A stretch of 64,000 nt of DNA, taken from assembly GCA_004764695.1 (NCBI GenBank), contig SMSO01000031.1, forward strand, positions 4,378,436 to 4,442,435, read 5' to 3'. A program made the position numbers and the translations under genes. Origin of the DNA: Schizochytrium sp. TIO01 (Eukaryota > Protista > Bigyra: Labyrinthulomycetes). Under the pieces are notes generated by a model. The model was not told where the DNA came from, made no database searches, and saw only the letters and a program-made list of their open reading frames with translations. Each line of letters begins with the position of its first letter. Position 1 is the first letter of the stretch. Of the stretch, positions 5,431 to 64,000 are shown piece by piece.

Positions 5431-6945
5431 TTACACAAGACGTTTAAGTTCAAGAAGAATTGTGTCCATAGAAGGACGATGTTTGGATTTGTGGTTTAAG
5501 CACTCATGCATAAGTCGCTCGAGTGGCCTGAATTCCTTTGGGGCAAAATATCCCTGAGGAGGAAACTGCTCGCTGAGTACAAGTTCCTCAACCTGACTCA
5601 GCGTGTAATGCTTATAAAAAGGCTGCTCACGGGCAAGCATCTCATACATAATGGCTCCGTACGACCAAACATCAATAGACTCATCGTACATATCGCCACG
5701 AAAACACTCTGGACTGCGATATTGCGGAGAGGTAACACAGGTTGATGTGCGTTCAAAGGGGCCCGATTCTCCGGGTGCGCGCATGCGCTTAGCCACCTCA
5801 AAATTGGTGAGCTTGGCGGTATAACTAAATCCATTCATGTGCAAATCAGGGTCAAGCGAGGAGTATGCGCCTGGCTGATCAGTACCTGACTGGGCTCGCC
5901 AAACTGGAGTAGGTTGCTTCCCATTGCCAGAAGTGGAGTTTTTCTCACTAGAGTTACCGAAGATGTTACTAAGAGAGCGACTGAGTCGAAAGTGCTTACG
6001 CATGGCTGCCGCCCAGTTACCACTGGTAGGGAAATCTGCATAGACCATCATTACATTTTCAGAGGTAAGATCACGGTGTACGATACCTTGTTCATGGAGA
6101 AATACGAGGGCTTCGGCTATATCCATGGAATACTTACGTACTTCAATATAGGATAGCCTTTCATGACCCGTAGCGCGATGGAACACGAGGTCAGAGAGCG
6201 AATCGACAGCAAATTCAAAAGCAATACGGCGCTCAAGGACATCGTCGAGTCCACGATATTCTTCGTACCCGAAGAATTGTATGATGTTAGGATGCTCGAG
6301 CTTTTGCAGGATATTAAGCTCGTTGTTGAAGATTTGATTATGGTCAGGGAGGCATGTAGGAGCTTGCAAACGAAGTTGCTGAACATATACAATGCCATGC
6401 TTTTCGGAAACTGCACGAAATGAGTGTTTACCTGAGACTGGACTGCGACTAAGGTCATCGAGCAAGTTCAACTCGCCCGTGAGCCTTTTAAGTTTGGCAG
6501 GGACGATGATATCTCCAAAGTCTCCTTGCGCTGTCCAATTATTGGAGATTGCGTGGCCACTTGAAGACGTTTGCAAGATTGGGAATTCATCGGAGTCTAT
6601 CTCATCATTAAGGCTCAGTGATTCGCTTGATGGACTTGCTTCCTTCTGTGTCCCACGTCTTTCGCGGGATGACATTTTCACAAGCTTAGATGTAGCATGT
6701 GATATCTGAGAAACTATTGTTTTCCTGGCGGGGGGGACACCTTGGGGCTGACCTTGCGTCTTTGATTGAACAGAGGCCGAGTCCTCCGCAGCCTGTGCTT
6801 CAAGAAACATATCAAGATGTCTACAGTGTCCAGCTTCTCTAAACTCGGCACACGAGCAGGAGGGGCCTGCCCATCGTTTGCGCTGCTTACATTGTTGAAG
6901 AGCGTTGAAAAGTCCTTGGCCAAGACTTGGCTTGTGGAGCGACAT
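5431..6945 (-). CDS. Protein kinase-fold protein (TKL-like, probable pseudokinase) with N-terminal SWIM-type zinc finger
   Basis: Kinase motifs ELNILQKLEHPNII, HRDLTSEN, YRSPE, DVWSYG and HRPS are present. The VAIK position reads VYVQ and DFG reads NFE. N-terminal CSCAEFREAGHCRH fits CxC-xn-CxH. Confidence 0.88.
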   Translation of the reverse strand: MSLHKPSLGQGLFNALQQCKQRKRWAGPSCSCAEFREAGHCRHLDMFLEAQAAEDSASVQSKTQGQPQGVPPARKTIVSQISHATSKLVKMSSRERRGTQKEASPSSESLSLNDEIDSDEFPILQTSSSGHAISNNWTAQGDFGDIIVPAKLKRLTGELNLLDDLSRSPVSGKHSFRAVSEKHGIVYVQQLRLQAPTCLPDHNQIFNNELNILQKLEHPNIIQFFGYEEYRGLDDVLERRIAFEFAVDSLSDLVFHRATGHERLSYIEVRKYSMDIAEALVFLHEQGIVHRDLTSENVMMVYADFPTSGNWAAAMRKHFRLSRSLSNIFGNSSEKNSTSGNGKQPTPVWRAQSGTDQPGAYSSLDPDLHMNGFSYTAKLTNFEVAKRMRAPGESGPFERTSTCVTSPQYRSPECFRGDMYDESIDVWSYGAIMYEMLAREQPFYKHYTLSQVEELVLSEQFPPQGYFAPKEFRPLERLMHECLNHKSKHRPSMDTILLELKRLV

Positions 6946-43900: not shown

Positions 43901-46440
43901 AAGAAAGCTACGACTAGATATCTGGCTGGACAGATGGATACCTCGAATGCAGTGCTTGGTTGCCCCGACTTTTTTGGCTTTCTTGATGGTTGTATGAGGT
44001 CCAGTTCAACTCGAGGAATGCTCAATTGCATAGTAAAGCTCTCTGCAGTGCAGGATTATGAATGATTGTGGCTTGAGCAGATAATTTTATAAACAAGTTA
44101 TTCATTACTTACAAGGAAGTTCGCAAGGTGATCTGCCTGCTTCAGTTTGGCTCCACTCAAGTCAACTCCACACGACCCAAAAGGAAATGATCTCGATGAG
44201 AGGTCCAAGGTCGAGTCAGCCAGCTAGCTAGCGGATCACAAGAGTCGAAATTATGAAGTCCAGAAAAGTAGCTGGTTTCGGCTTCCTACTGCAAAGGCCA
44301 GGTCGTGCGTGCCTAACCGAAGGACTACTACTGATTTGCAAAGCGAAGATGATGACGATGCTAATGGTAGACGAGGAGTTGGATTAGGTGGATTAGGTGG
44401 TTGTCCTCGAATTCGAGATGAACATCGTGGTATCAATCGATGCAATTCGAGAAAGGCGAGGGAGGAATTCTTCTTCCATCTGCATGGATCTGTGTTTTCA
44501 TGAACATTCATTTTTTACAAAATTCATTTAATAACTTTTAGTTTATTTCTTCTACTCATAGAAGTAATGCTTGCTAACTTACTTTTCTCTTTGATTGTTT
44601 TGATAGTTTGAAAGCATTCATTCTCACGTTGATCTGCCTGAATCGAATTACTACTAGGCACTCAATCACCACTAAAGTCGGGTTGGTATTTGAAGTAGAC
44701 CAACTTACAAGAGGAAAAAAGGAAAAAGGCGTGTAGATATAAAATAAAACTAACTCAGGAATAGGAGTAACTATGGGAGACTAAGCGTAAAGACTTCCCA
44801 CCATTTCGCACTCTTTCGCAGGTGATATGAGGTAATATGGATGGGATTTTCATCCCACTACTTAGATTAAAGCTCAAACACGGCGACGCGAGATGGAAGA
44901 AGCACCTCTCCCTCCTTATTTAGACAGGCAGAAATAAAGGAAATGCAAAAACCTCGTGGTCGATGCCACTAAGATGACTTTTTATATTCGATAAGAAAAT
45001 GTTTTCATAAAGAATGGAAAAAGTAAAGCTCGATCACCCTATCTCATGGATAACTAACTACCCTTATGAAGAGTGGTCGGTATACCAGACCCGGGGCGCT
45101 GGACCCGGAAGTGCTGAAAAATAATTGAGAAGAGAAAAGAAAACAAGCTCCCCCCCTTTCCTCCCTTTATTTCTTTTACTTACGTTTTAGTCTACATCAT
45201 TTGTGGTGATTTCATCTGATTTAAACAAAAATGGGTGAAACTTTTTTTTTTTTTCAACATTTTGGGACAACTAAGTCTAGGCAGCCATTCTTTCTTTTAT
45301 TTGTTTCTGTTTGTTTGGTTTAGTTTATCGCGACTTGAAGTTCACTTCCCCCTCCTTCCCCAGAGAGGGAGAGTCGCAATAGCTGGAACGTAGCAGCAGA
45401 GAACTATGATGAGAAAATGAAAAGTGGGAAAACTACCAACCCTCCGACAAATACATTTGGCACCTGAGTGCTAAAAACGATATGAATAAAAATGTAAGTA
45501 ACAAACAACCTGAAAAAGAAAAGAGGTAAAGATACTTAGTGATATGGGTAGTAGTGCTAGACACTTCCTACTTTGTGAGATACACCGGGGCTTGTATATC
45601 GTCGCACTCGCCTCGAGTCGTCGCCTCTCTAGACTACAAAGCTCGCGCAGCTTTTTCTTTTTATTTATTTTATTTTATTTCATTTCATTTATTGGAATGA
45701 AGTGGTAGACTCAAAACTTTTATTTTATCAACATTATTTCTAATGAAGAGTGAGTGTTTCACCACATTGAAACGAAGAAGATGAAGAAGAACTGAGTTTT
45801 GATTTTTTCATTTAGGCATTCTTTTATTCTCTTGTCCTTCTCATCTGAAATAAATAAATAGAAATTAGTAAGCTACATTTTAGTTTTAGTTTTTTTTATA
45901 GTTAGCTTATATTGCATTATTGCTAAGGCTGCTTATCTTTGACTCCCTGCGATTTGTCCAAAGAAGCCGTGCTTGGGCATGCTTCGCCGCAGAAGACAGA
46001 GGTTTACACGTCACTCGCTGATGATGGCCTTCGATTTATCGTGCAAAGTGATGGAAAGGACTCTGGGTTTGCGCCAGAGTGGCCTGCGATAGGAGCTCTT
46101 TTGCAGAGGAGATAGCCTCGGCTCGCGAGGCCATCTTCTTTCAGTTAGTTTGTGTGCCGGCTGAGCTAGTCCTACGTATAGAAGTAATAATCGCTGAAGA
46201 GCCAACAGGAACAAGACAATGAATAAGAGAAAATCTGTTTTTAGTTTTGTTTTCAATGTAATTTACTTTCATTGAAAAATAAAGCATGGTTTTCTTTCCT
46301 TTTCTTTTCTTTCTTTTTCTTTTCTTTCTTTTTCTTACGAGTTGTCGAAAGGAAGAAGGCGAAAGAAGAAAAAAGCCAATGAAATAAAAGAGGGAACAGA
46401 TAGGAAGAAATAAGAAAGGAGGAGGGAAGAAAGAAAAGAA

Positions 46441-46733
46441 AACAAAGAAACCAAACCCCAAATCAGCAGCACTCGAGCACTTCACTTGAGTGAGTCAACA
46501 ACAGCAAGAACAACTACAATAAGTAGAACTATCAGCAACACAGCAGAGAAGGCACGGGTTGCTCTCTACCTGGTTGCAAGCGCTGACAAGAAAGCAAAGC
46601 AAACCCCAAACTAGACTTCCTCGGCCGCAATAGCGCCAAGAAGAACAAACAACAATAATAACAACAACAACAACAACAAAGAACTACTCAATAAAGACAA
46701 GGAAATACTCGTCAGTCAGGTCTAGTCGGCAAG
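46441..46733 (+). promoter_or_regulatory. A/C-rich, ATG-free putative 5' UTR with a (CAA)n tract
   Basis: No ATG from 46441 to 46733; CAA/AAT repeats at about 46645-46680. Confidence 0.55.
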
Positions 46734-47489
46734 ATGCAACTCCAAGAGCAACGCACCGCCTTCTCACCGGCCCGCGCCATCCCGAGGTCAAACTCTGCGG
46801 ACCCTCTTGTGCAGAGCCTTGAGCAAGTTCCTTTCCGCCCGCACGCAGCTATGGGAATGCGCTCTCCTGTGGACGATCGCCGCAGCTCCTGCTCGAGCTC
46901 CGGCAGCAGTGTCTGCTCTGCTCGTGCCCCCCTTGTGACCAAAGCCGTGCGCCAAGTTTATGTTGATGTGGATTCGGATGTGGAGGAAACCTTCTCTGTA
47001 GAGGACGTGCCCACCTGCAACCAGGCCACCTCGCCTTGCCTCAAGGGCCGCAGCGGTCTTGCCAGAGCTCTTGCCATGAGCCCTGCACCGGACTCCATGC
47101 TCTCTTCTTCATGCTCTTCATCTCCTTCTACTACACATGTTACCTCAAGGTCTCTCGACTTCACCAGCGCAAGCCCGGTTCGCGCTCACTCCACCCGCTC
47201 AGTGGCATCTGCAGATGGCGAGGAAGCCATGCTCCTGCGCCGGATTCTCAATGATGACACTGATGTTCACTTCAAGCGCTGTGCTCACTGCAAGTGCGTC
47301 TACTCTGGCCCCGAGGGCGATGGCGATGGATTCTCCATGCGCCACATGTTCTGCAGCGGCGAGTGCTACATCACCGCTTTTGCAATGCTCCGCACCAGAC
47401 GCCAGGCTGAACGCCAGCGCCGTCAAGAGCAGCGCCAGAGATTCCAATACGAGATGGATGCCACAACTGCCAGTGCAATGCGCCGTTAA
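46734..47489 (+). CDS. Small disordered protein with FCS-type zinc finger (FLZ/Ecl1-like, CX2CX19FCSX2C) and charged C-terminal helix
   Basis: 251-aa ATG-initiated ORF (CAAGATG) with C/G-ending codon bias like the other genes. It has a Ser/Pro-rich N-terminus and the motif CAHC-x19-FCSGEC at aa 183-211, and is preceded by an ATG-free, A/C-rich leader. Confidence 0.82.
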   Translation: MQLQEQRTAFSPARAIPRSNSADPLVQSLEQVPFRPHAAMGMRSPVDDRRSSCSSSGSSVCSARAPLVTKAVRQVYVDVDSDVEETFSVEDVPTCNQATSPCLKGRSGLARALAMSPAPDSMLSSSCSSSPSTTHVTSRSLDFTSASPVRAHSTRSVASADGEEAMLLRRILNDDTDVHFKRCAHCKCVYSGPEGDGDGFSMRHMFCSGECYITAFAMLRTRRQAERQRRQEQRQRFQYEMDATTASAMRR

Positions 47490-50400
47490 ACTTGGTCATT
47501 TGTTCTGCATCATCTCAGTACCATTCACATATAAACCTCACACACAAGATTATCCCGCCGATGCAGTGAGCTCGCACTCACTTGTATCTCTCTGTAACGA
47601 TCGGACCTGAAACATTGTTCTGTCTCATGTCATGTACTCTAAAAGAGCTCATTCCGCGCCGCAGCCACTCTTTGCAAACAAACCCCTCATGAGGGTTTTT
47701 ATCATATTATCTCGCTATTCGCGCGACGCCCAACCATCACACAAAGTCCTCTCTCAAGGCCCGACTTCTTTGCTGTATTGTATCCCATATGATCCATCAT
47801 GATGTACTTTCACGAAAATCAAATCCTCTGCTCTCTGTTTTCATTGTTCTTTTGTCTTTTTGTTGGAGGTGGGTTACAGTTGCATGGCACCGCACCTGGT
47901 GTCAATATATACAAAGCCCATGCAACCCTTCCTTTCATTATAAACATTATACACACAACACACGAACATGTACAAACACCCTCACGCCTTCAATATCAAG
48001 AGCAATATGAGCCAGCAGGAGTCCAGCTAAGTCGGGTCTCCATTCCTTTGTAGTCAATCTTATGTCACTAATACTCATATATATATAGAGCTCTTTTGTC
48101 ATAGTTTCTTTATCTTCAAATTTAAATTCGTCTGTCTCTCTTTAATGTATCCCTTTTTTATTTTAGTTCAACCATAAGACCCTTCGTCCACCTGAATTCA
48201 TTGTATTCTCCAAGGCACACCAAGCTACCTGACGTTGCTGTTTATGAGGCAAGAGTTCTTCTGTCTATCGCCTGAGAGAAATTAGAAGTGCTGTGTGATG
48301 CCATGTATTCTATGAGCAAAGAAATGTCTTTCCTATTTTCAGATCATTTGGACAAAGACTCCTTGTAATCCCTCAAGTGAGTGACGCTGCAGATTGACAT
48401 ACTAATTTCAAGTACCATTTTCGAGTGGATTCATTTTTTTTAAAGACTTCGACTAAGCAGCGTTTAAGGGAAGGTCCTGCTTATTATGGCAAATACTAGA
48501 ATGCGTACTTGGGTCTAAAGTTGTCCCAAAGGACCCGTCGGTTGATGCTCGAGTGCTGTACTTTAGCACCACACTTCACTCCCTTACTCCGTGCAGAGCA
48601 GCTTTTCTCCCTTATCAAAAGAATGGGTACAGTAAGATCAATATTATCAGACAAAGGTAAACGTATCTAAACTATCATAACGACTCTGCCATTTTCACCC
48701 CCGATAATTATCTCAACTAAATTGCAGTTGATCAATTTAATTCACTTTTCCACCAGAAGCTCATGAGTTTCCACACGCCACGTTGCTTCCCACTTTTGAT
48801 CCATGAAATACCATTATAGTCATAATAGTGAGACTCAACATATCGTTGTACAACTCAAGTTGGAAAACGCTATGCAGCTATTACTGCAAAGTGTATGTAT
48901 CTGTAGGAGTACTTGGGCGAGTCCAGGAATAGTTACTATAGCCTAGCAAATCAACTCCCCCCCACTGCCAGTCACACTACTTCTTAATTGCAGCTGCCCC
49001 TACCAGTACCCTGAAAGCTTTGACACACCTGCTGCCGACAGAAACCCACGTCTCAATTAACTCTCAACTAAGCTCAACTCTCCACCTCGGTTCTATGTAC
49101 CCCTACCTAAAACCAAAGTCTCCGACGCGCGTGTGTCCTGAGTTCCGCTTAACGGACGTTTCATGGATAGATAACCTCAAGGTCACAACAAGCTTAGAGT
49201 GCTCCCAACAGCCAACTGGTGCCTTTGCAGTTTGCTGTTTTATAAGCTTCTATAGCTACAACCTCAACCTCCCTTCGCAACCTGCTCTGCTTCCGTAGTA
49301 CCTTGCTTGTCCTTGCTTTTAACGGACTACACTGTTTTGAGGCAACAGTCAAGAATTGCTCCAGTCTATGTTTCTAAAGCTGGACTGATGCCTTTTGGAT
49401 ATGGACTAGCAGCCCATTAAGGTTTACACTAGTGGTGTGGTAGGCCTTTACATTCTAACACTACCGGCGGTTGCTGCTTCCCTCGTTGCTGCTGCAAGTG
49501 GATTTTACTACTTTTTAATAGCCCTGTTGCTTTATCAAAAACTGATAGAAAGTTAAACGCAGGTAAATGATAAATATGTTGAAGGTGGATCATTTATGTT
49601 TTGCTTTAATTTAAATCTAGCATATTATTAAAGAAATCTAACAAAGAGGTGCTTGTGATTGACATGTAACCTCCTTCGACGTCCTCCGCGCTTTGATTCA
49701 CCCAAACTTTTACCACATTTTTCAGGATTAAAAAAGTAAAGGAAATAGAGAAAGGGCGGTTGGTAAGACCTCTAACACCTTCTGAACCTTTGACAAGGCA
49801 ATAAGGATTAGAGTTGGGAAGAAACTAACGCGAGAAAGATCCGCTTTCTTCCCAAGACGTCGTCACCAAGGTTGACTAACTTTAAACTCATGCTGCCCGC
49901 GGACCTCTCAATTTTTATTCATTATTGAGAAAACCTCTATGTGGTAAAATGTAACCTGTGCAAGATTTGTTTATTTTCTTTCAAAGTAACTGAGAAAACA
50001 CACTATGGTACTAAACAAATACATTACCGGCATCGGAGTGCTTGCCTGTTACAAAATCCAGATAAAGCACATTTTTCTCTTCCTATTTCTTTCCCCTTCT
50101 TTTGTCTAAAAGATTTCTCATTCTTTAAAGTGTTGTTGATTCTCTGCTTCAGAAGTTGGAACTGATCATCACATTCATCTTGTGTTGCTGAACGATCGCC
50201 ACAAGGGGATGAAGCATATTTTCCTAAGTAAATTAGGTAGTTCGTGACAAACTTTGGTATACAGATCAACTGCCCTGTACTTTTTGGTTGTTATCCTCCT
50301 TACGTTTGTGTTGGCAATTGCCAGGGCAAATTGAGAAAATATTGACCCTTATTTGTATGAAGTCTCTGTAGTTGCTTCACAGCACCATGATACAAGTATG

Positions 50401-51212
50401 CAAAAGAAATAGTACATCTAAGGAAATGCCAATCAATATAATGTTTCATCGTAGTACGGAAATTCCATATACTACGCAAAACATATTTTTGTGGTGTTTC
50501 ATAGCTAACTTCACTCTGCCCACAAAGAACAAATTGAGCTTTTCAATCAGTTGAAATTTCGGGGTAATGTAATTGATTATGTTTCAGAGTGGAGATGAAT
50601 TGTTTTTTGCCATTTGTAATTGGCTTAAGTAGCAAGTACAAAGATTGAATCAGTTTCGTTATAAAGCAATGTTGGTGTATATAACGACAGCTGGCTAAAG
50701 CAATGTTTAACTTCGTGAAAATTGTAACACGTACCTGTTGCGATCCATCTCCTTTAGGTACTGCAATGATGAGAATAAGTTGATGTGTTGATATAATACT
50801 CGTCACCGGAGGCAAGTATCATTTCAATTTATTTATCAAAGCTGCAGAAGAGCGCTGTCACGCCCATCATTGACAAGACATTGCTTGGGTTATACGCATT
50901 TCTTTGTAAGACCTCAGGAATGTAGAATTACAATAGAATAGAACTAACAACCAGACTTGCGTGTTTGGGAAATTAAGAAACAAAAATGTTCATACACATT
51001 CTCTAGAAGCAATAGTCGAGTCTGAATTGATAGTTAAAGAGATGAGTTAAGCTCGCCTCGTAAATTGCGTCTAACATAGCTCAAGTATTTTTTAGTAATC
51101 TTCTAATTACAACGATAACTAGTCTGTCTTGGTATCTGCAGATCTCTAACGCTTAAAAGCTATAGATCTCATGTCTTCGCAAGCCCCATTTTATCCTTTC
51201 ATCATCGAGCAT

Positions 51213-52613
51213 CTTGCCTTCATCTTCATAGCAACCTCTAGGTGACCATATTCATCTTTCAGAAGAAAGTTTGAACGCAAGACTGTGCACTGACTTGAAA
51301 AATGAGACGCAAAAACGTTGATATAAAATACAGGATAGTGCCGTTTCCTTTCAGGTATTTGTCCACCCTAAAATTGATCAGCAATACGTCTTATGGCTGT
51401 TTGAATTCTTTATTTCAGCTTGATCGTTATGATACCTTGAAACTAAATCGTCTCAAATGTTGTGTTAAAGTTCGATCTTGATATTTGAAGGAATGACTAG
51501 CCATTAGTTAGGTTGCATCAACACAGCATCATTTATGCAAGCCACCTCATACTTCGATTAAGCAAGAACTCCAAGATTGGAAAGTTACGAATTGAGCATA
51601 CTATATTTACTTTTCCTTCGAAGCGACATACATCCCTATAAAATATGATGAGGATGTTTAGCTACCCATGCTTGTCAAGCCCAGACGTTTGATATTGAGG
51701 TCACTAGTTGTTAAGAACGGGGAAATCGAATTGTGATTCAAGAGCAATTGTTGATCCTTAAAGGTGAGGGCTGTCGGATCATGTTAGATAGTCAATATAA
51801 CATTGCAGAGATTGCCACTCGAATGATTACGTAACCAAGACATAGCTAGTATCATAATTATACCTCTTTAAGTCTAAGATATCAAGGTATGTTTCAAACT
51901 GGGACGAAAACAACCAAATTCAGGGCCGGGGAGCTAAGAAATTTGAGACTACAAATTCACAGAAATCACAAATTAGAAATTGAATCAAATATGCCTGCTC
52001 AAACTGCTGGGAGGATAAATGCTTTTGCTGAGATCTCCAATCGAAGGAACCAGTGGACAAGACATTGCTAGAGTTCTTGGTGTCCCTTTGTAAAACCCCA
52101 TTAGACATAAGGTTTACAATAGAACAAGAATAGGCAGTCAGACTCGCGTGACTGCTGAAGCCAAGAACTAGAGGTGTGAATACACATTACCCACACCCAA
52201 GCTTATTTTAGCTTGAACCGATGGTTGGAGAAGTTGGATTAACCTAACCCCATCGATTATCTCTAACCGCATTCAAGAATGTCTTAATCTCCCTAACTAC
52301 TACATTAACCCATCTGTCCTGGAATTCATTCCCCAGGACAGCAGTTCGCTAGCTCGTAAATCAACCTTCTTAAAGCCTTCATCAAGCCTCTTGCCTTCAT
52401 CTTCTCAGTCAACCTCAAGCTAATCAGAATCACCTTTCAGCAATTTTAACTTCGCCAATGAAACTTTGATGAATGAATCCTTCTAGATTAAGATGCATTC
52501 CTTCGTCATGCAGATCATAAATTCTAAATGCGCGAATTTATACAGACTGAGGTAGCTGCTGTCCCTCAGCATCTTGTCAGTCAACCTCGAGCTGACTAGA
52601 CCTCACCTCTCAG
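51213..52613. repeat. Three diverged copies of a ~50-bp local repeat (51213-51262, 52390-52440, 52570-52613)
   Basis: Shared core CATCTT...CAACCTC...TCA.CT.TCAG, recognised by eye. Confidence 0.7.
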
Positions 52614-55600
52614 CATTTTCCAAGCCGTAATGAATCTTTACTCCTCATATATTATGCTAGTCAATTCTTAGTTGATCAGTTTTCAACTTTCAGCATATAC
52701 GCGTTGGCAGGAACTACTGATATCCGAATTCCGAATTTACCTGCTGTGCATACTAGCACGCCAAATATTTGTTCGTAAGACAGATCGTGTCAAGCTTAGC
52801 CCAGTTCACGAAGTATGCATCAATCTATCTTGAAATTGTCAAAGTCAGATTGCGATTGATGGGACGATGAAGAGCTGGCGATTTCAGGCAATTTTAAGTG
52901 TTGGTTTATTGAGTAGTGATCACCTGACGAGATTGAGATAAATTCAAAAAAGCAGAGTCCGAGGCTCTTGGATATGAGACAGACTAGAAGAGAAAAGACG
53001 AAAACCTGGGATTATGAATTAGCCACTTGCAGACTTTGGAACTGGATTCCATATGAGAATTTGACCTTGAATGACTTACGAGTGCGTAATATTGTCCGTC
53101 CTCGGGCACAGTTTCAGACAATAGTCATGGTATTAAGACTCTAACAATCATCGAGTTTGTATACAAAAGTGTTGAACACACTCTCTTAAACTCTACAGTA
53201 ATTAAAACCAGGGCATACTTCCGTTGTTTGAGCACGCCTTGATATTCTTGGGCTGGCAGGAGAATACTAAAGACTTTTTCGACATTTCCTACTCATGTTG
53301 CTTTAACTGTTAGTGATATATTTTTATCTCTATGGAAACTATCTGCCAGCAGCAATTGTTATTTGACTGCTCGTGTTCGACTGAACTATCCAAGAAACAT
53401 ACGCAGCACCTCTTGAGTAAAGACGCTGCAAATACACACTATGGGGCCCATCTTCCACAGTTCGGGCAACTAGATACTATTCCACTTTACCTTAAAATAT
53501 GGAAGGGAGTTGCCTTCATTCTGTTTTTGTAGGTTAACTGCAACAGAAAAGCATAGGTGCCTTTGTTTGCACAGCTTCAGAGTTTAGGACCAACTTAATG
53601 CACTTGACTATCAGGCTTATGCTTCTTTCGGTTTCTTTGGAGAGCAACACTTCTATGATTAAAAAGCTGGCAGTACCTATTTTCGATGATATATATATAT
53701 ATCGAGCTGATATATATATATATCGAGCAAAGGGTTGAAAGAACTTCATGCAGATCGTTGGTTTACAAGCATTGTGATTAAACGACAAGTGATTGCGTCC
53801 TGTAATCTTATCCCTAAAGTAAGTATGATAACGTAAATGTTTGAGGGTTTACGAATGACACAAATATCAATAGGTAAACGATAGTCACACATGTAGCAAT
53901 GTATGAGTGTGTAGACGGATACCACTTCACATTTTTCACTTCTGCAAGATGAAGTTGAAGGTTTCTCTGACTGCAAATAACCCTGAAGCAACTTGTTAGA
54001 GCTTGCAGCACTCTGCCTTGCGATGCAGTCTCATCAAGCAAGAGATAATAACATAAGCGTGTGCAACATTATAGAAATATTAAGTCCTTTTTCACGTGAA
54101 TCCTCCACTTATAATAACATGGCTTAACACACCTAAGATCAAATGTGCAATTTACCTCTGCGATACATGCCGAAGTACTTATTGAAACATAAAACATATA
54201 TGCGGACGCGATTTGATATACGGGCAGAATGGCTGACTTATAATTGGTTGAAGTTTAAGCAACTATTTAATCAGAATACTCGACACACAACACAAAGTCG
54301 GATTTGTTGAAAAGGTATATTTCATTCGGTGGATGGGTTTGCAGTTCCCTCGAAGAGACTCGCACGAGTTCACGGCGATGATGTTCAACATGATACTGTC
54401 TATGAAGTCATAATGATATAGTCCAACAAACTAGAAGTATCACTCAATTCAATGGTTCTCAAAGTGTACAGTGAAAGAATAGTGGGTGTGCGGCACGGTC
54501 AGCATGAACGAAAACAAGTGTGAGGAATATGATCGAGGTGTCCCGGTATTTATTGTGTTACCCGCCTCGCAATGTACTTTCCCTTGATTGTGAACACCAA
54601 CCAAACTCCAGTTACAAAGTAACACCTAAATACCATTCATCTTAAGATCGTACGACTGGGAAATATATCGTTTGACAATGCCAACCTATATCATTAATTA
54701 TCTCATTGAATATAGAATTTTGTTTACTGCCAATACTAGACAATAGCGCGTTGCGCAGGTTGTGGAGATTTTTTGGGGCAGCCTCACTCACGTTGTCTTT
54801 TGAAATTAGTATGCCTGTCAAACGTGCACGCTCGGCAATAGCGCGAAATTCAATGCGCAAAACCTTAGTATATCAGTCTCCGTTAATGACGCAAACCCTG
54901 ATGAACCCAAAATTCTCTACATGCTTGAGCTTTATTGATGTATAGAAATGAAGGCTTAGCATGTTGTAAATGTTTGGGACCCAAATTTTCCGTCCTTCAA
55001 CATGTAAGAAAGAACCGTTCTTCCTGCTAAATTTGGGCATTTACCAGTTCGTTGATATATTCCACAACAACGAAATCACCCACGTTGCATCCGCACGCCA
55101 ACCAAGCAACTGCGTTTACCCTTCCTTTCATGTACGTATCATACACCGACAGCAATCTACCTCGCGTTGCAGCCCTGGCGCGCGATCTTGAATTTCCATT
55201 CTAGCACCGCGCGCGCCTTAGTCAGCGTTGAACTACGTCGAAATGAGCCCTTAGAGTTATATATAGTCAGGTCATACTGGCCATGCGCCTGGAACAGATT
55301 TTTGTATTTTTTAAATTAAATTAAATGTTTTCATCCATAGTAGGTAGTAGTACCTGGAGCATTTTGTTAATGAAAAGTGCTGTTAATACGGTGGTATAGT
55401 TTCCACTAGTTATACATTAGAGAAGCAAGTAAAGTATGTTACTTAATGATAACGATAAGAAGAATCGTGGATAAGGGTGCTTGCGTTTTTGGGATCCTTC
55501 TGAATAGAGAAATAAATCAATCAAAAAAGCGCTTCGATTGAGCGAGCGAAAGGACGCGCGTGCGAAACTATCAAAGGTGCGTACTAGCTTCTGGGAAGCC

Positions 55601-55693: not shown

Positions 55694-57256
55694 ATGAGCT
55701 CGGGCGACCCCAGCGGCTCAAACTATAAGGGAATTGCTCTTGCAACAGCCACCATGCTTGGAGCTGCCACCCACCTTCTCCGTAGTAGGCTCTCCAAACG
55801 CCACCTGAAGAAAGAGTCTGACTCAGGTTCTTCAAATGGATCTGAAAACGTTATGAGCGTTGAGGGTCAGCTTGCTCAACTTTATGAAGAGATCCCGAAC
55901 ATTCCTGAGACCGAAGATTTCTTGGGCCTCGAACTTGACGAAAACCGCTACTTAGATCTCCTCAGCCGTCTTATTGACGAAAGCGAGCATGTGCAGAACT
56001 TTCCTCCCGAGCTCGTGCCCAAGGAAGATCTCGTTGTGCAGCATGTGCTCGAAGTTCTGGAGCCATACACCACTGAGAATGGTGGTCCTTTAGAAGTCGA
56101 GGCCGTATCCTTCACCGAAGGTCGCAGCAACGTCATCATTCGCTACCCAAGCAAGAACGAATCTGATCCTACTATTGGTCTTATTGGTTCTCACATGGAT
56201 GTCGTCCCTGCTGTAAAGGAGAACTGGAAAAGAGATCCTTTCCACTTGACTGTGGAGGGAGACAAACTCTATGGTCGTGGAACCACAGATTGCCTTGGCC
56301 ACGTTGCTCTCCTTACCCTCTTTTTTGAGGCCCTTGCCAAGCAAAGACCGGAGACCAGTGCACATGTTCTTGCGGTCTTCATCTGCAGTGAAGAGGCCAC
56401 GGACAAGCCTGGTGTTGGTGTCGATGGGCTCCAAGCCAAGGGTTACCTCGATAACCTTCGCAATGGAACTTGCCTTTGGATCGATGCCAGCGACTCAGAG
56501 CCTTGCATTGGTACTGCTGGAGCACTCCAGTGGCACCTCAAGGCTACCGGCAAGCGCTTCCACTCTGGATTCCCAAACCTTGCCATCAACCCTATCGAAA
56601 TGCTTGTCGAAGCATCGCGTCTGTTGCAAGATAAGTTTTACGAAAAGTACGCCCCACACCCGGACGAAGCTCGATACAACTTCCTCAACCCATCCACCAT
56701 TAAGCCCACGCAGATTTCCTCTGCAAAAGGAGGTCTTAACCAGATCCCGCCCACTGCAACCTTCTCGGGCGATATCCGACTCACTCCGTTTTACAGCTGC
56801 CAGGATGTTATTGACACCATGAACCAGTGGGTGGAGGAGCTAAACGAGACTCGCTTTAAGGAACTTGGCACTCGTGGACCGGTCTCCAAGTATGAGCTCC
56901 CTGCGGAAGACCTCATTGGTAAAATTGAGCTGGAGTGGGCACACGACGACGACGAACCGCTCATGGAAGGCATTGCTTGTGATATTAACTCGCCTGGATT
57001 CCTTGCTATTTGCGATTCGATCAAGTCTGTTCGGGGCTCTGTCAAGCCTTACTCCATCTGTGGTTCCCTCCCGCTCGTTCGTTCTATGCAGCGTGCTGGT
57101 TTTGATCTTCAGATCACTGGGTTTGGCCGTTCTGACGCCTACCACGCTGAGAATGAATATTGCCAGCTCTCTGACATGGTCAATGCCTTTAAGATCCTTT
57201 CTGGCTATGTTTCCAAGCTCCAGGCATATTACAAGGAGCAGCAGGAGCAGCAGTAA
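55694..57256 (+). CDS. argE: Acetylornithine deacetylase (M20 metallopeptidase family, plant/Dictyostelium NAOD type)
   Basis: M20 motifs GSHMDVVPA, LYGRGTTDCLGH, SEE, WID, GKRFHSG, GSLPLVR and YHAENEY. Confidence 0.9.
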   Translation: MSSGDPSGSNYKGIALATATMLGAATHLLRSRLSKRHLKKESDSGSSNGSENVMSVEGQLAQLYEEIPNIPETEDFLGLELDENRYLDLLSRLIDESEHVQNFPPELVPKEDLVVQHVLEVLEPYTTENGGPLEVEAVSFTEGRSNVIIRYPSKNESDPTIGLIGSHMDVVPAVKENWKRDPFHLTVEGDKLYGRGTTDCLGHVALLTLFFEALAKQRPETSAHVLAVFICSEEATDKPGVGVDGLQAKGYLDNLRNGTCLWIDASDSEPCIGTAGALQWHLKATGKRFHSGFPNLAINPIEMLVEASRLLQDKFYEKYAPHPDEARYNFLNPSTIKPTQISSAKGGLNQIPPTATFSGDIRLTPFYSCQDVIDTMNQWVEELNETRFKELGTRGPVSKYELPAEDLIGKIELEWAHDDDEPLMEGIACDINSPGFLAICDSIKSVRGSVKPYSICGSLPLVRSMQRAGFDLQITGFGRSDAYHAENEYCQLSDMVNAFKILSGYVSKLQAYYKEQQEQQ

Positions 57257-57723: not shown

Positions 57724-58563
57724 TTAGGCCTTGGACTGCTCCGAGTTCTTTTGGTCCTCAATAGAAACTGTGGACAAGCTTTCTGCTAAGCCGCAGATGC
57801 TACGGTCAGGATGCAGGCCTTGCGAAATACCCTTGTTAATTCGTTCCTCGCGACGTTTCATGAAAGCATCGAATCCTGGGGTTTCGCGAAGCGTGATGAG
57901 TGTGATCGGGCATCCCTCAAGGTGTACACGATTAACAACGGTATTTGTGAATAATTCACTTGGAATGCTGGTCAGTTTATTGTTGCGAGCTTTGAGACAA
58001 GCTAGTTTAGACATTTCCCCTACAGCAGGTGGTAGTGCCTCAACCTGGTTGTTGTCAATGTCAAGTTCCTCCATAGCATGAAGCGCTTCAAAGCCAAACG
58101 AGTCTCCAAAGCTTGTGATTAAGTTGTTGGAGAGGTTTGCAGAAGCCACGCAAGGCGGCAAAGCCAGCCTTGGGTGGCCGACCTCGCCCTCAAACTTGTT
58201 AAAAGACAGATCCAGCTGCTTCAGCTTGGATCGCGGGAGTACAGCAGCTACAGTGTGAAGAGAATTATGATCTGCAATAAGCGTACGTAATTCCGTAAGA
58301 TGTATCAGCTCCATGGGTAACTCCTGCAGCGCATTGCATGACAGACGAAGAGTTTGCAATTTTGCCAGGACGCCAATTTGCGAAGTCAGTTCCTCGATGC
58401 CATTCCCACTAAGGTCCAAGCTTCGCAACCTCGGTCCCAGCAACCACACTTCCGCAGGAACACGCGTGAGTTTGCTCTGCGCCAGCACCAGCCTGCCAGT
58501 TTTCCCGCCTTGGTCGATAGAGTTTTCCAAGGTTTGTTTACCCGTCGAAGACGTTGTGCCCAT
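57724..58563 (-). CDS. Leucine-rich repeat protein, LRRC57-like
   Basis: Tandem LxxLxLxxNxL repeats (LRSLDLSGNGI, LQTLRLSCNAL, LKQLDLSFNKF). The N-terminus MG...KTG (possible myristoylation) and C-terminal LRETPGFDAFMKR resemble LRRC57. Confidence 0.85.
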   Translation of the reverse strand: MGTTSSTGKQTLENSIDQGGKTGRLVLAQSKLTRVPAEVWLLGPRLRSLDLSGNGIEELTSQIGVLAKLQTLRLSCNALQELPMELIHLTELRTLIADHNSLHTVAAVLPRSKLKQLDLSFNKFEGEVGHPRLALPPCVASANLSNNLITSFGDSFGFEALHAMEELDIDNNQVEALPPAVGEMSKLACLKARNNKLTSIPSELFTNTVVNRVHLEGCPITLITLRETPGFDAFMKRREERINKGISQGLHPDRSICGLAESLSTVSIEDQKNSEQSKA

Positions 58564-60324: not shown

Positions 60325-61593
60325 ATGCTTTCAACTGGAGTTCGACAGTTTCGCGCTGCTGCTGTTTCGCAGAAATGGCAACAGCAAGTCCGCGCACTCA
60401 CTGCCACCTCTGGGGCTGCTGACAAGCTCAACTACGATTTCACAGCTGCTCTGAACCTTGTGCGGCCTGAGACTTATGACACGCGTAAGGCATACCAACT
60501 CGTAGATGCTCACGGCGAGCTGCGCGAAGGCGCCAAGGAGCCTACAGTCGGAGCCGAAATGTGCCAGAAGATGTACGAAACCATGGTGCGCCTGCAAGTT
60601 ATGGACCACGTATTATATGAGGCCCAGCGTCAAGGTCGCATTTCTTTTTACATGCAGAGCAGTGGTGAAGAAGCTGTCAACATTGGCTCTGCAGCTGCTC
60701 TCAAGAACGAAGATGTTGTCTTTGCGCAGTACCGTGAGGCTGGAGTTCTCATGTGGCGTGGTTTCACGCTGCAAAACTTTGCTGATCAGTGTTTTAGCAA
60801 CGTGGATGACAGCGGTAAGGGTCGCCAGATGCCTATTCACTATGGTTCCGTGGAGCACAACTTCCACACCATTAGTAGTCCGCTGACCACTCAGCTTCCA
60901 CAAGCTGTTGGAGCCGCGTATGCTTTTAAGGATGCTGGCCGTGAAGGCCCCGTGGTGGCCACCTACTTTGGCGAAGGTGCTGCCAGCGAAGGTGATTTTC
61001 ATGCTGCTATGAACTTTAGCGCCACGCTTGAATGCCCGATTCTGTTCCTTTGCCGCAACAACCAGTACGCTATCAGTACCCCGGTGCAAGATCAGTTCCG
61101 TGGCGATGGTATCGTATCGAGAGCGGAGGGATACGGCATGGCCTCTCTCCGTGTTGATGGCAATGATGTCATGGCCGTGTACGAGGCTGTGAGCGAGGCA
61201 CGCTCTTACGCCCGTGAGAACAATCGTCCTATTCTTATTGAGATGATGTCCTATCGTATTGGGCACCACTCAACTTCTGACGATTCCACAGCCTACCGGC
61301 CGATTGAGGAAATCGAGAGCTGGCGCGAAAAGGCTCACCCGATCCCTCGCTTCCGCAAGTTCATGGAGGACCGTAAGATGTGGGATGAAGAGAAGGAGGC
61401 TGCTCTCCGTACGGAATCTCGTAAGGCAGTGCTTCAGGCTATGACTCGCGCAGAGGACAAGGGCAAGCCTGAGCCCCTCGATAACCTCTTTGCTGACGTG
61501 TACACTGAGATGCCCCAAAATCTGATTGAGCAGCAGCGTGAGCTCCAGGAGCAGCTCAAGAAGTATCCTTCCCATTACGCTGTGTTTCACTAA
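60325..61593 (+). CDS. BCKDHA: Branched-chain 2-oxoacid dehydrogenase E1 alpha subunit, mitochondrial
   Basis: QRQGRISFY, GKGRQMPIHYG, ISSPLTTQ, ThDP-binding motif GEGAASEGDFH...CRNN, and phosphorylation loop YRIGHHSTSDDSTAYR. The Arg/Ala/Ser-rich N-terminus resembles a mitochondrial presequence. Confidence 0.96.
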   Translation: MLSTGVRQFRAAAVSQKWQQQVRALTATSGAADKLNYDFTAALNLVRPETYDTRKAYQLVDAHGELREGAKEPTVGAEMCQKMYETMVRLQVMDHVLYEAQRQGRISFYMQSSGEEAVNIGSAAALKNEDVVFAQYREAGVLMWRGFTLQNFADQCFSNVDDSGKGRQMPIHYGSVEHNFHTISSPLTTQLPQAVGAAYAFKDAGREGPVVATYFGEGAASEGDFHAAMNFSATLECPILFLCRNNQYAISTPVQDQFRGDGIVSRAEGYGMASLRVDGNDVMAVYEAVSEARSYARENNRPILIEMMSYRIGHHSTSDDSTAYRPIEEIESWREKAHPIPRFRKFMEDRKMWDEEKEAALRTESRKAVLQAMTRAEDKGKPEPLDNLFADVYTEMPQNLIEQQRELQEQLKKYPSHYAVFH

Positions 61594-62831: not shown

Positions 62832-64000
62832 TTAACGGTCTACGCCGTACTCCTTACGGTAGGCCTCAACAGCGGAGAGAACCTCTGCGTCAAACTTGGT
62901 GCCGGTGGAACGAAGAAAAGACAAAAGGTCATCAAGGCACACAATAGAGTGCACATCAAAGCCAAATTCCTTCTTGACAGCTTGAATAGCGCTCAAGTCA
63001 CCCTCCTTAGCACGCTCCTGGCGGTCAAGAGCGATAACCACACCACTGATCTTGGCATCCTCCACAGAAAGGATGTCAATGCATTCGCGAATGGCCGTAC
63101 CAGCAGTGATGACATCATCCACAACGAGCACACGCTTACCACGAACAGGAGCACCGACAAGAAGACCTCCCTCGCCATGGTCCTTCTTCTCCTTGCGGTT
63201 GTATGCAACGGGAACATCCTTTCCAAACTTGCGGTACAGCGAGGTGGCAATAACACTTGCGAGAGGGATACCCTTGTATGCAGGTCCGAAGAGGACGTCA
63301 AATTCAACTCCAGAGCGCACGATAGCCTCCGCGTAGAAGTCTCCAAGACCGTCGAGAGCAGAGCCGGAGTTGAAGAGACCCGCGTTGAAGAAGTACGGGC
63401 TCTCGCGTCCAGACTTGAGCGTGAACTTTCCGAACTTGAGCACCTCGCACTTCAAAGCAAGCTCAAAGAACTGCTTCTGGTACGGCGCAAGCACGTCGCC
63501 CTCTCCGGCCTCCTCGACCTTGGCACGCTTCGCCTCAGGCTGTTCAACACTAGACCTAACGCCGTTGATCATGTCGCGGAACTTCTCGGCGGCAGCCTTG
63601 GGGTCCTCCGCACGAGAAATTCCACGGGACACAGGCACAAGAAGTCCCATTCCATCCTCTCGAAGTCCAGCCTTGGCGGCAGCTTCGAGGTCTCCTCCTT
63701 GGAAGCCAACTCCCGGGGCCAGAATCCACAGCGAGGGTGCGGCAGCCCTCGAGCGAGCAAGTGCCTCAACATCCGTTGCGCCTACCACAAGTCCAACATT
63801 GTTGTTATCATTCCACTTCTCACACAGCTGCGCCACACGCTCGTAAAGAAGACCGCCTTCAGAGAGCGCCACAGTCTCGAGATCCTCAGAACTCGGGTTC
63901 GAGGTCTTGCAGAGAACAAAAGCACCTCGAGAGGCGTCTTTGCCTACAAAAGGCATGATTGAGTCCGAGCCCATGTACGGGCTGAGAGTTACACAGTGCG
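62832..64000 (-). CDS. UMPS: Bifunctional UMP synthase with OMP decarboxylase N-terminal to orotate phosphoribosyltransferase (5' end outside window)
   Basis: The frame stays open to the window edge ([13 protein letters not shown]). OMPDC motifs: [32 protein letters not shown] motifs: [46 protein letters not shown]. Confidence 0.96.

Follow-up and report, generated by a model that had tools for sequence, protein, structure and literature searches.

A probable FLZ-like variant of the FCS-type zinc finger in a small protein family of thraustochytrids

The DNA analysed here is a stretch of 64,000 nucleotides (the window) from Schizochytrium sp. TIO01 (contig SMSO01000031.1, positions 4,378,436 to 4,442,435), in which an open reading frame at 46734-47489 on the forward strand encodes a protein with a Phe-Cys-Ser (FCS)-type zinc-finger signature near its C-terminus. 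The gene is genuine and expressed. We assign a probability of about 60% to the reading that it is a genuine intronless thraustochytrid gene, one paralogue of a small family, whose product carries a single-zinc C2C2 FCS finger of the TRASH clan with an FLZ-like layout, belongs to a sequence family of its own and acts as a small regulatory adaptor. The finger family is rated as a new lineage-specific, FLZ-like variant of the FCS type; an FLZ-type label already exists for one relative in UniRef.

The coding sequence (46734-47489, forward strand) is uninterrupted and intronless and comprises 251 codons. The ATG at 46734 is the first of the transcript, since the segment 46461-46733 contains no ATG and an in-frame stop occurs at 46692. 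A protein from the MMETSP transcriptome is 100% identical over all 251 residues and its reading frame is marked complete; JGI and Logan assemblies likewise contain the 251-residue protein, again with 100% identity. Three assemblies, each from a different study, were presumed to be RNA because of their sizes of 16-40 Mb compared to 64 Mb for the genome, a guess based on size; in these the locus was covered by single contigs that start at 46461-46467 and end at 48073-48087 without joints. The contigs are consistent with an unspliced mRNA of about 1.6 kb (approximately 46461-48087, forward strand) with a 5' untranslated region (UTR; 46461-46733, forward strand) free of upstream ATGs and a 3' UTR of about 0.6 kb (47490-48087, forward strand). 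The 5' limit is less certain because of an adjoining masked simple repeat. In a 65-Mb assembly, presumably of DNA, the contig extended past both transcript ends. The original prediction, a reading of the window by a model, presupposed a transcript, and the identical MMETSP sequence and the contigs in the presumed RNA assemblies bear this out. The coding sequence is further marked by its G+C content of 59%, as compared to about 40% in the flanks, and by its polymorphism: six of the seven substitutions between strains are synonymous, third-position changes, and all indels are in the UTRs, none in the coding sequence.

Of two simple repeats near the start of the transcript, one, a purine-rich GA/AAG tract (46284-46458), flanks the 5' UTR and the other, a CAA/AAC microsatellite (46636-46690), lies inside it. 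The window differs from all four assemblies compared, including the DNA-sized one, by small indels at 46711 (4 bp, an extra GTCA copy in the window), 47746 (1 bp) and 48012 (1 bp). Either variation between strains or errors in the long-read assembly of the window could account for them.

Residues 180-214 (47271-47375, forward strand) read F-K-R-C183-A-H-C186-(19 residues)-F206-C207-S208-G-E-C211-Y-I-T, which places the four cysteines of the finger at positions 183, 186, 207 and 211, with F180 in front and a variable Gly/Ser/Asp loop followed by R203-H204 between the two cysteine pairs. The pattern C-x2-C-x14-30-FCS-x2-C has a single occurrence in the six-frame translation of the window. The N-terminal region, residues 1-160 (46734-47213, forward strand), contains 21% Ser and 8% Pro, with six Ser-Pro (SP) sites in addition to basic-x-x-Ser sites, and is predicted to be disordered, with predicted local distance difference test (pLDDT) values mostly below 50. 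After the finger a long helix was predicted for residues 208-250 (47355-47483, forward strand; pLDDT 89-98), which begins inside the finger at the fourth cysteine, runs to the C-terminus and consists of 23% Arg and 15% Gln.

An AlphaFold2 model of residues 153-251 (mean pLDDT 79.5) showed helices at model positions 11-21 and 57-98 and strands at 27-30 and 37-40, i.e. a short helix, a beta hairpin forming the CxxC knuckle, a low-confidence loop, and the long helix that opens at the GEC of the fourth cysteine. The full-length model has the same elements, with the remainder disordered. The first helix corresponds to residues 163-173, EAMLLRRILND (47220-47252, forward strand), and is conserved with the protein from Hondaea; the hairpin, in the full-length model, pairs residues 180-182 with 189-191 (residues 180-191, within the finger). 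The translation of the reading frame, the composition and the models agree with what the original prediction had described, namely C-AH-C-(19 residues)-FCS-GE-C at residues 183-211 after FKR, a disordered Ser/Pro-rich region in front and a charged helix behind.

Relatives were collected by an exhaustive phmmer (HMMER) search of 1.84 billion protein representatives with residues 153-230 as the query at E ≤ 0.001. Nine matches were found, which include eight genuine clusters, with the window protein counted among them; the ninth, P0008, was rejected as a repeat protein that lacks the finger. One named relative is Hondaea fermentalgiana GBG26137.1, with 52% identity overall and 83% in the finger region, and a Mucochytrium quahogii protein represents cluster P0004. 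Five further clusters, from ENA, JGI and Logan, carry no taxon label; the three labelled clusters are all from thraustochytrids. The 64-Mb genome has exactly three copies, the window gene and two paralogues on other contigs. One paralogue, L010, encodes 408 residues (L010:1483-2706, reverse strand; G000:C24 at about 75.5 kb) and the other, L011, encodes 320 residues (L011:709-1668, forward strand; G000:C34 at about 1.42 Mb) and matches the 320-residue Logan protein P0013. Both follow the plan of the window protein, with a long disordered region and then CRHC-x23/24-FCSGEC[HY]LT near the C-terminus.

In an alignment of ten family members C183, C186, F206, C207, S208, G209, E210 and C211 are invariant, so the finger is no chance motif, and the pattern CxxC...FCSGEC is kept in all ten. 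F180, R203 and Y212 are nearly invariant. The conservation of the four cysteines in relatives, which had been an expectation of the original prediction, is thus complete within this set. The spacing between CxxC and FCS is 18, 19, 19, 19, 20, 22, 23, 24, 25 and 29 residues, the extra length being due to a low-complexity loop rich in Gly, Ser and Asp. In every member the finger is located 16-46 residues from the C-terminus. The helix following it keeps its basic character in most members, and its sequence is otherwise poorly conserved. A second conserved element is located in the disordered arm, where residues 100-117 (47031-47084, forward strand) form the short linear motif SPCLKGRSGLARALAMSP. 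Its core, residues 104-117 (KGRSGLARALAMSP), corresponds to the consensus K[RK]SGLA[RL]AL..SP that is kept in most members, with S107, L109 and L113 nearly invariant in the ten, and a short helix was predicted at residues 108-114. Paralogue L010 retains this motif as RKRSGLFRVL.

Broader searches added no members. A profile search of a 5.8-billion database with the family alignment returned only close relatives, low-complexity words having swamped the query, and a region-restricted search with P0004 retrieved only P0004 itself and a frameshifted copy. DNA scans of viral and metagenome sequences for FCSGECY-encoding segments gave no relatives; two viral loci picked up by the DNA pattern were rejected as off-frame chance matches. 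No viral relatives were retrieved from IMG/VR. In a 142-residue protein from MMETSP0098, P0014, about 100 residues are the same as in P0004, and the two sequences part immediately ahead of the finger, which suggests a frameshift in the assembly of the P0014 transcript. The literature search found no paper mentioning the Hondaea or Mucochytrium accessions, and in the top-ranked papers of a combined search FCS-like zinc fingers were not mentioned together with thraustochytrids or other stramenopiles.

The membership of the finger in known families was examined with profiles. A Pfam search at E ≤ 10 with the window protein, used whole and as pieces of 82 and 41 residues, matched no finger profile, zf-FLZ, zf-FCS and Ecl1 included, so at the level of Pfam profiles the comparison envisaged in the original prediction came out negative. 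The two paralogues and seven relatives likewise gave no curated family match. The only zf-FCS hit among the relatives was that of P0005, at 17.6 bits (E 0.0034), below the gathering score of 22.4 bits; the corresponding score of zf-FLZ is 23.4 bits. Six-frame scans of the genome gave six weak matches of at most 17.8 bits with the zf-FLZ model and a few weak ones with the zf-FCS model, all elsewhere and none at the window locus. The best zf-FCS match in the genome, also sub-threshold at 17.8 bits, lies on the same contig as the window in a 770-residue open frame (L007, G000:C30:7929730-7929864, reverse strand), which may encode another FCS-type finger protein.

Structure comparisons gave no significant match. 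Among solved structures, neither the single sequence nor two family profiles retrieved a relevant entry. The top row of a Foldseek search was 2w0t, the FCS finger of L3MBTL2, with E 0.55 and a template modelling (TM) score of 0.62 on the target over 42 columns, and row 35 was 2das, the TRASH domain of ZMYM5; no row was significant. A VIA-align comparison with 48,161 chains was uninformative as its list was filled by long-helix matches. In ESM-Atlas the window protein found zf-FLZ clusters first, with scores of 0.82, 0.77 and 0.77, and paralogue L011 first found a giant-virus cluster at 0.78 that was also found for the window protein; all these scores lie below 0.9, the level from which a match counts as more than a lead. 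For two of the paralogues the named cluster that comes nearest has 60 members of about 147 residues from Nucleocytoviricota, with zf-FLZ in 12% of them. UniRef names P0004 'FLZ-type domain-containing protein', a name taken to be automatic, and names the closer relative P0002 'Uncharacterized protein'.

The zf-FCS consensus is CX2CX14-30FCSX2C (PMC4047054), and all ten members fit it with their spacings of 18-29. The suggestion in the original prediction that the finger could be of another FCS/TRASH type agrees with this signature; the zf-FCS profile stays below its gathering score.

A working model can be proposed on this basis. The C-terminal module would consist of the short helix, the CxxC beta hairpin, the variable loop and FCSGEC, with the last cysteine opening the long basic helix. 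The zinc-stabilised finger and the helix could together provide a docking surface for a partner protein, and the disordered arm, which carries basic and proline-directed Ser sites, may serve as a phospho-regulated tether, so that the protein as a whole would work as a small regulatory adaptor. For FLZ fingers, protein-protein binding is the role that has been documented (PMC4047054, PMC10904321).

Several points weigh against this model. No profile match attains a curated threshold in any member, and none of the solved structures is significantly similar in sequence or fold. The assignment to the FCS class is therefore based on the cysteine signature, on scores below threshold and on the topology seen in the models. 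We infer that the protein binds zinc, works as an adaptor and is regulated by phosphorylation; the Arg-rich helix would be just as suitable for binding nucleic acids. Furthermore, five of the eight clusters carry no taxon label and the restriction to labyrinthulomycetes is therefore provisional.

The main alternative, improbable in our estimate, is a nuclear nucleic-acid-binding protein in which the finger and the Arg-rich helix would bind RNA or DNA with little specificity and the disordered arm would recruit factors. Polycomb-group FCS fingers are reported to bind RNA or DNA with little sequence specificity. The best structure row, although non-significant, was the L3MBTL2 finger. The high Arg content of the post-finger helix and the basic character that most members maintain there are in line with such a function, whereas beyond charge the helix sequence is poorly conserved and no significant match to any nucleic-acid-binding domain was obtained. 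P0006 carries GKRPRP near its N-terminus (residues 8-14), and we take the pentapeptide KRPRP to be of the classical nuclear-localisation type. The corresponding position is taken by only FRPH in the window protein, which lacks KRPRP, and by [KR]RPGLY[IV]xT in other members. Many plant FLZ proteins start with MLLGKRPRP..RTTS, and the list of PMC4529292 (S5 Table) contains 10 occurrences of KRPRP and 22 of LGKR. The occurrence of KRPRP in both P0006 and plant FLZ proteins, as judged from the sequences, may reflect a shared nuclear-localisation-type motif or chance. The zf-FCS group is described as comprising both nucleic-acid-binding and protein-binding fingers (PMC4047054).

Quite unlikely in our view is that the family is a true, anciently diverged homologue of plant FLZ whose finger would bind the catalytic domain of Snf1/AMPK alpha, and perhaps RAPTOR as well, and tune energy and starvation signalling. 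This is the stramenopile FLZ counterpart that the original prediction had put forward. The FLZ signature is CX2CX17-19FCSX2C plus many further conserved residues (PMC4529292), and the window protein, with a spacing of 19, falls inside this range; six of the ten members are outside it. A helix-hairpin-helix (alpha-beta-alpha) arrangement is said to separate FLZ from other zf-FCS fingers (PMC4047054), and such a topology was predicted in the AlphaFold2 models. The architecture is also shared, a disordered region being followed by one finger close to the C-terminus, and the UniRef name of P0004 and the sub-threshold zf-FLZ neighbours in ESM-Atlas point weakly in the same direction. The Pfam zf-FLZ model (PF04570), on the other hand, recognised none of the ten members even at E ≤ 10, let alone at its gathering score, and its six best weak matches in the genome lie elsewhere.

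The residues that define FLZ were compared by motif counts in the plant list of PMC4529292 (S5 Table), which contains about 147 FCS motifs. YRG is present 117 times in that list and ECR 119 times (both counts approximate), as against zero of ten for either motif in the thraustochytrid family. Conversely, FCSGEC occurs in all ten members and not in the plant list, and ECY in nine of ten members and once in plants. The absence of the plant YMYRG loop noted in the original prediction hence applies to the entire family, in which the loop is a variable low-complexity segment instead of the conserved DI[FY]MYRG strand. The conserved Phe precedes the first Cys by three positions here and by four in two plant FLZ sequences. 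From the motif counts and the spacing it follows that the family and plant FLZ share the cysteine frame and the layout, not the FLZ-defining residues; of the proposed FLZ relationship, the spacing of the window protein, the predicted topology and the name of P0004 stand, while the Pfam profile, the family spacing and the YRG/ECR residues speak against it.

For the kinase part of this proposal the reference is Arabidopsis FLZ3/DUF581-9, the finger of which binds the N-terminal 290-residue catalytic domain of KIN10 and loses binding in a Cys-to-Ser mutant (PMC10904321). The genome encodes one clear Snf1/AMPK alpha orthologue in an apparently intronless 653-residue frame (L012:4-1965, forward strand; G000:C33 at about 1.063 Mb), with a Pkinase domain at residues 55-307 and an AdenylateSensor domain at 500-582. 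The presence of this orthologue agrees with the proposed, putative contact. A complex prediction with the finger module, residues 45-330 of AMPK alpha and Zn gave a score of 0.00 with 'no answer', a result that counts neither way. Several papers describe FLZ proteins as plant-specific scaffolds of the energy sensor SnRK1, and no algal members were reported (PMC4529292). A Pfam DUF581 match in the stramenopile Blastocystis was reported once, and one FCS-type protein in Ectocarpus has also been mentioned (PMC4047054).

An Ecl1-type starvation and lifespan protein as in fungi is very improbable. Ecl1 is also a small zinc protein with four cysteines, and Ecl1 proteins bind RAPTOR and inhibit TORC1 (PMC11984688), a theme that a preprint describes for some FLZ proteins as well (bioRxiv 10.1101/2023.08.14.553285). 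However, the Ecl1 cysteines C6, C9, C20 and C24 form a CX2CX10CX3C pattern at the N-terminus of an 80-residue protein (PMC11984688), as opposed to CX2CX18-29FCSX2C at the C-terminus in the present family, and because of this difference in cysteine spacing an Ecl1 identity was rejected. Ecl proteins are stated to be fungal only (PMC11984688), and neither the protein nor the genome gave a Pfam Ecl1 match, although in the genome scan the controls likewise gave none. The relationship to Ecl1 suggested in the original prediction was accordingly dropped. A chance reading frame or chance cysteine pattern without function, for which only the missing curated family match and the low-complexity N-terminus could be cited, is practically negligible in view of the identical transcript, the conservation in Hondaea, Mucochytrium and five further clusters, the synonymous-biased polymorphism and the single occurrence of the pattern in the window.

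In its surroundings the FCS-finger gene is an isolated GC-rich (59%) coding island. No open reading frames of at least 200 residues were found in window positions 7000-46000 (about 39 kb upstream) or 47600-55600 (8 kb downstream). The G+C content there ranges for the most part from 39 to 48% and rises locally to about 53%, at 14-16 kb and again at 24-26 kb. The ends of the window carry ordinary eukaryotic genes, in order a KH-domain protein (336-2240), a protein kinase (5431-6945), an M20 peptidase (55694-57256), an LRR protein (57724-58563), a 2-oxoacid dehydrogenase E1 component (60325-61593) and a UMP synthase-like protein (62832-63974), i.e. an OMP decarboxylase/phosphoribosyltransferase. 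These genes have no apparent functional link to the FCS-finger gene.

For the present, the finding extends the FCS/TRASH finger clan by a lineage-specific family; it would gain importance only once binding to AMPK or TOR had been shown. The analysis defines ten sequences as a family, of which this genome contributes three, and provides the invariant residues, a conserved motif of docking type, a gene for a candidate partner and negative tests of membership in known families. Lipid accumulation in thraustochytrids is usually triggered by nutrient limitation, and a regulator linked to AMPK/TOR would therefore be a practical target. These organisms are described as industrial producers of lipid rich in docosahexaenoic acid (DHA) (PMC8539084). 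If FLZ homology and docking to AMPK alpha were both true, the FLZ-SnRK1 module would be no land-plant invention, and would either be older than the divergence of plants from stramenopiles or have been transferred between the two groups.

Among known systems, fungal Ecl1 (PF12855) likewise consists of small Cys4 proteins, and Ecl1 binds zinc and is implicated in nutrient signalling; its N-terminal cysteine set includes no FCS motif. The resemblance to plant FLZ (PF04570/DUF581) comprises the C2C2 finger with F-C-S at the third cysteine, a spacing of 19 in the window protein, the predicted order of short helix, beta hairpin and long helix, and the presence of one finger per protein after a disordered region in small proteins (146-408 residues). 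Unlike plant FLZ, the family gives no Pfam match, varies in spacing from 18 to 29, lacks the ECRxxQ helix start as well as the DI[FY]MYRG strand and has RH[LM]-FCSGEC-Y[IL][TS] instead, and its labelled members are from thraustochytrids, not land plants. With the zf-FCS/MYM-type and Polycomb FCS fingers (PF06467, TRASH clan) it shares the broad consensus, and the 17.6-bit score of P0005 and the L3MBTL2 row point to the same group, although all scores of the family are below the thresholds. The metazoan FCS fingers have no flanking helices and are found, often in tandem (MYM), in large chromatin proteins, whereas the proteins of the thraustochytrid family are small and disordered, with just one finger, at the C-terminus.

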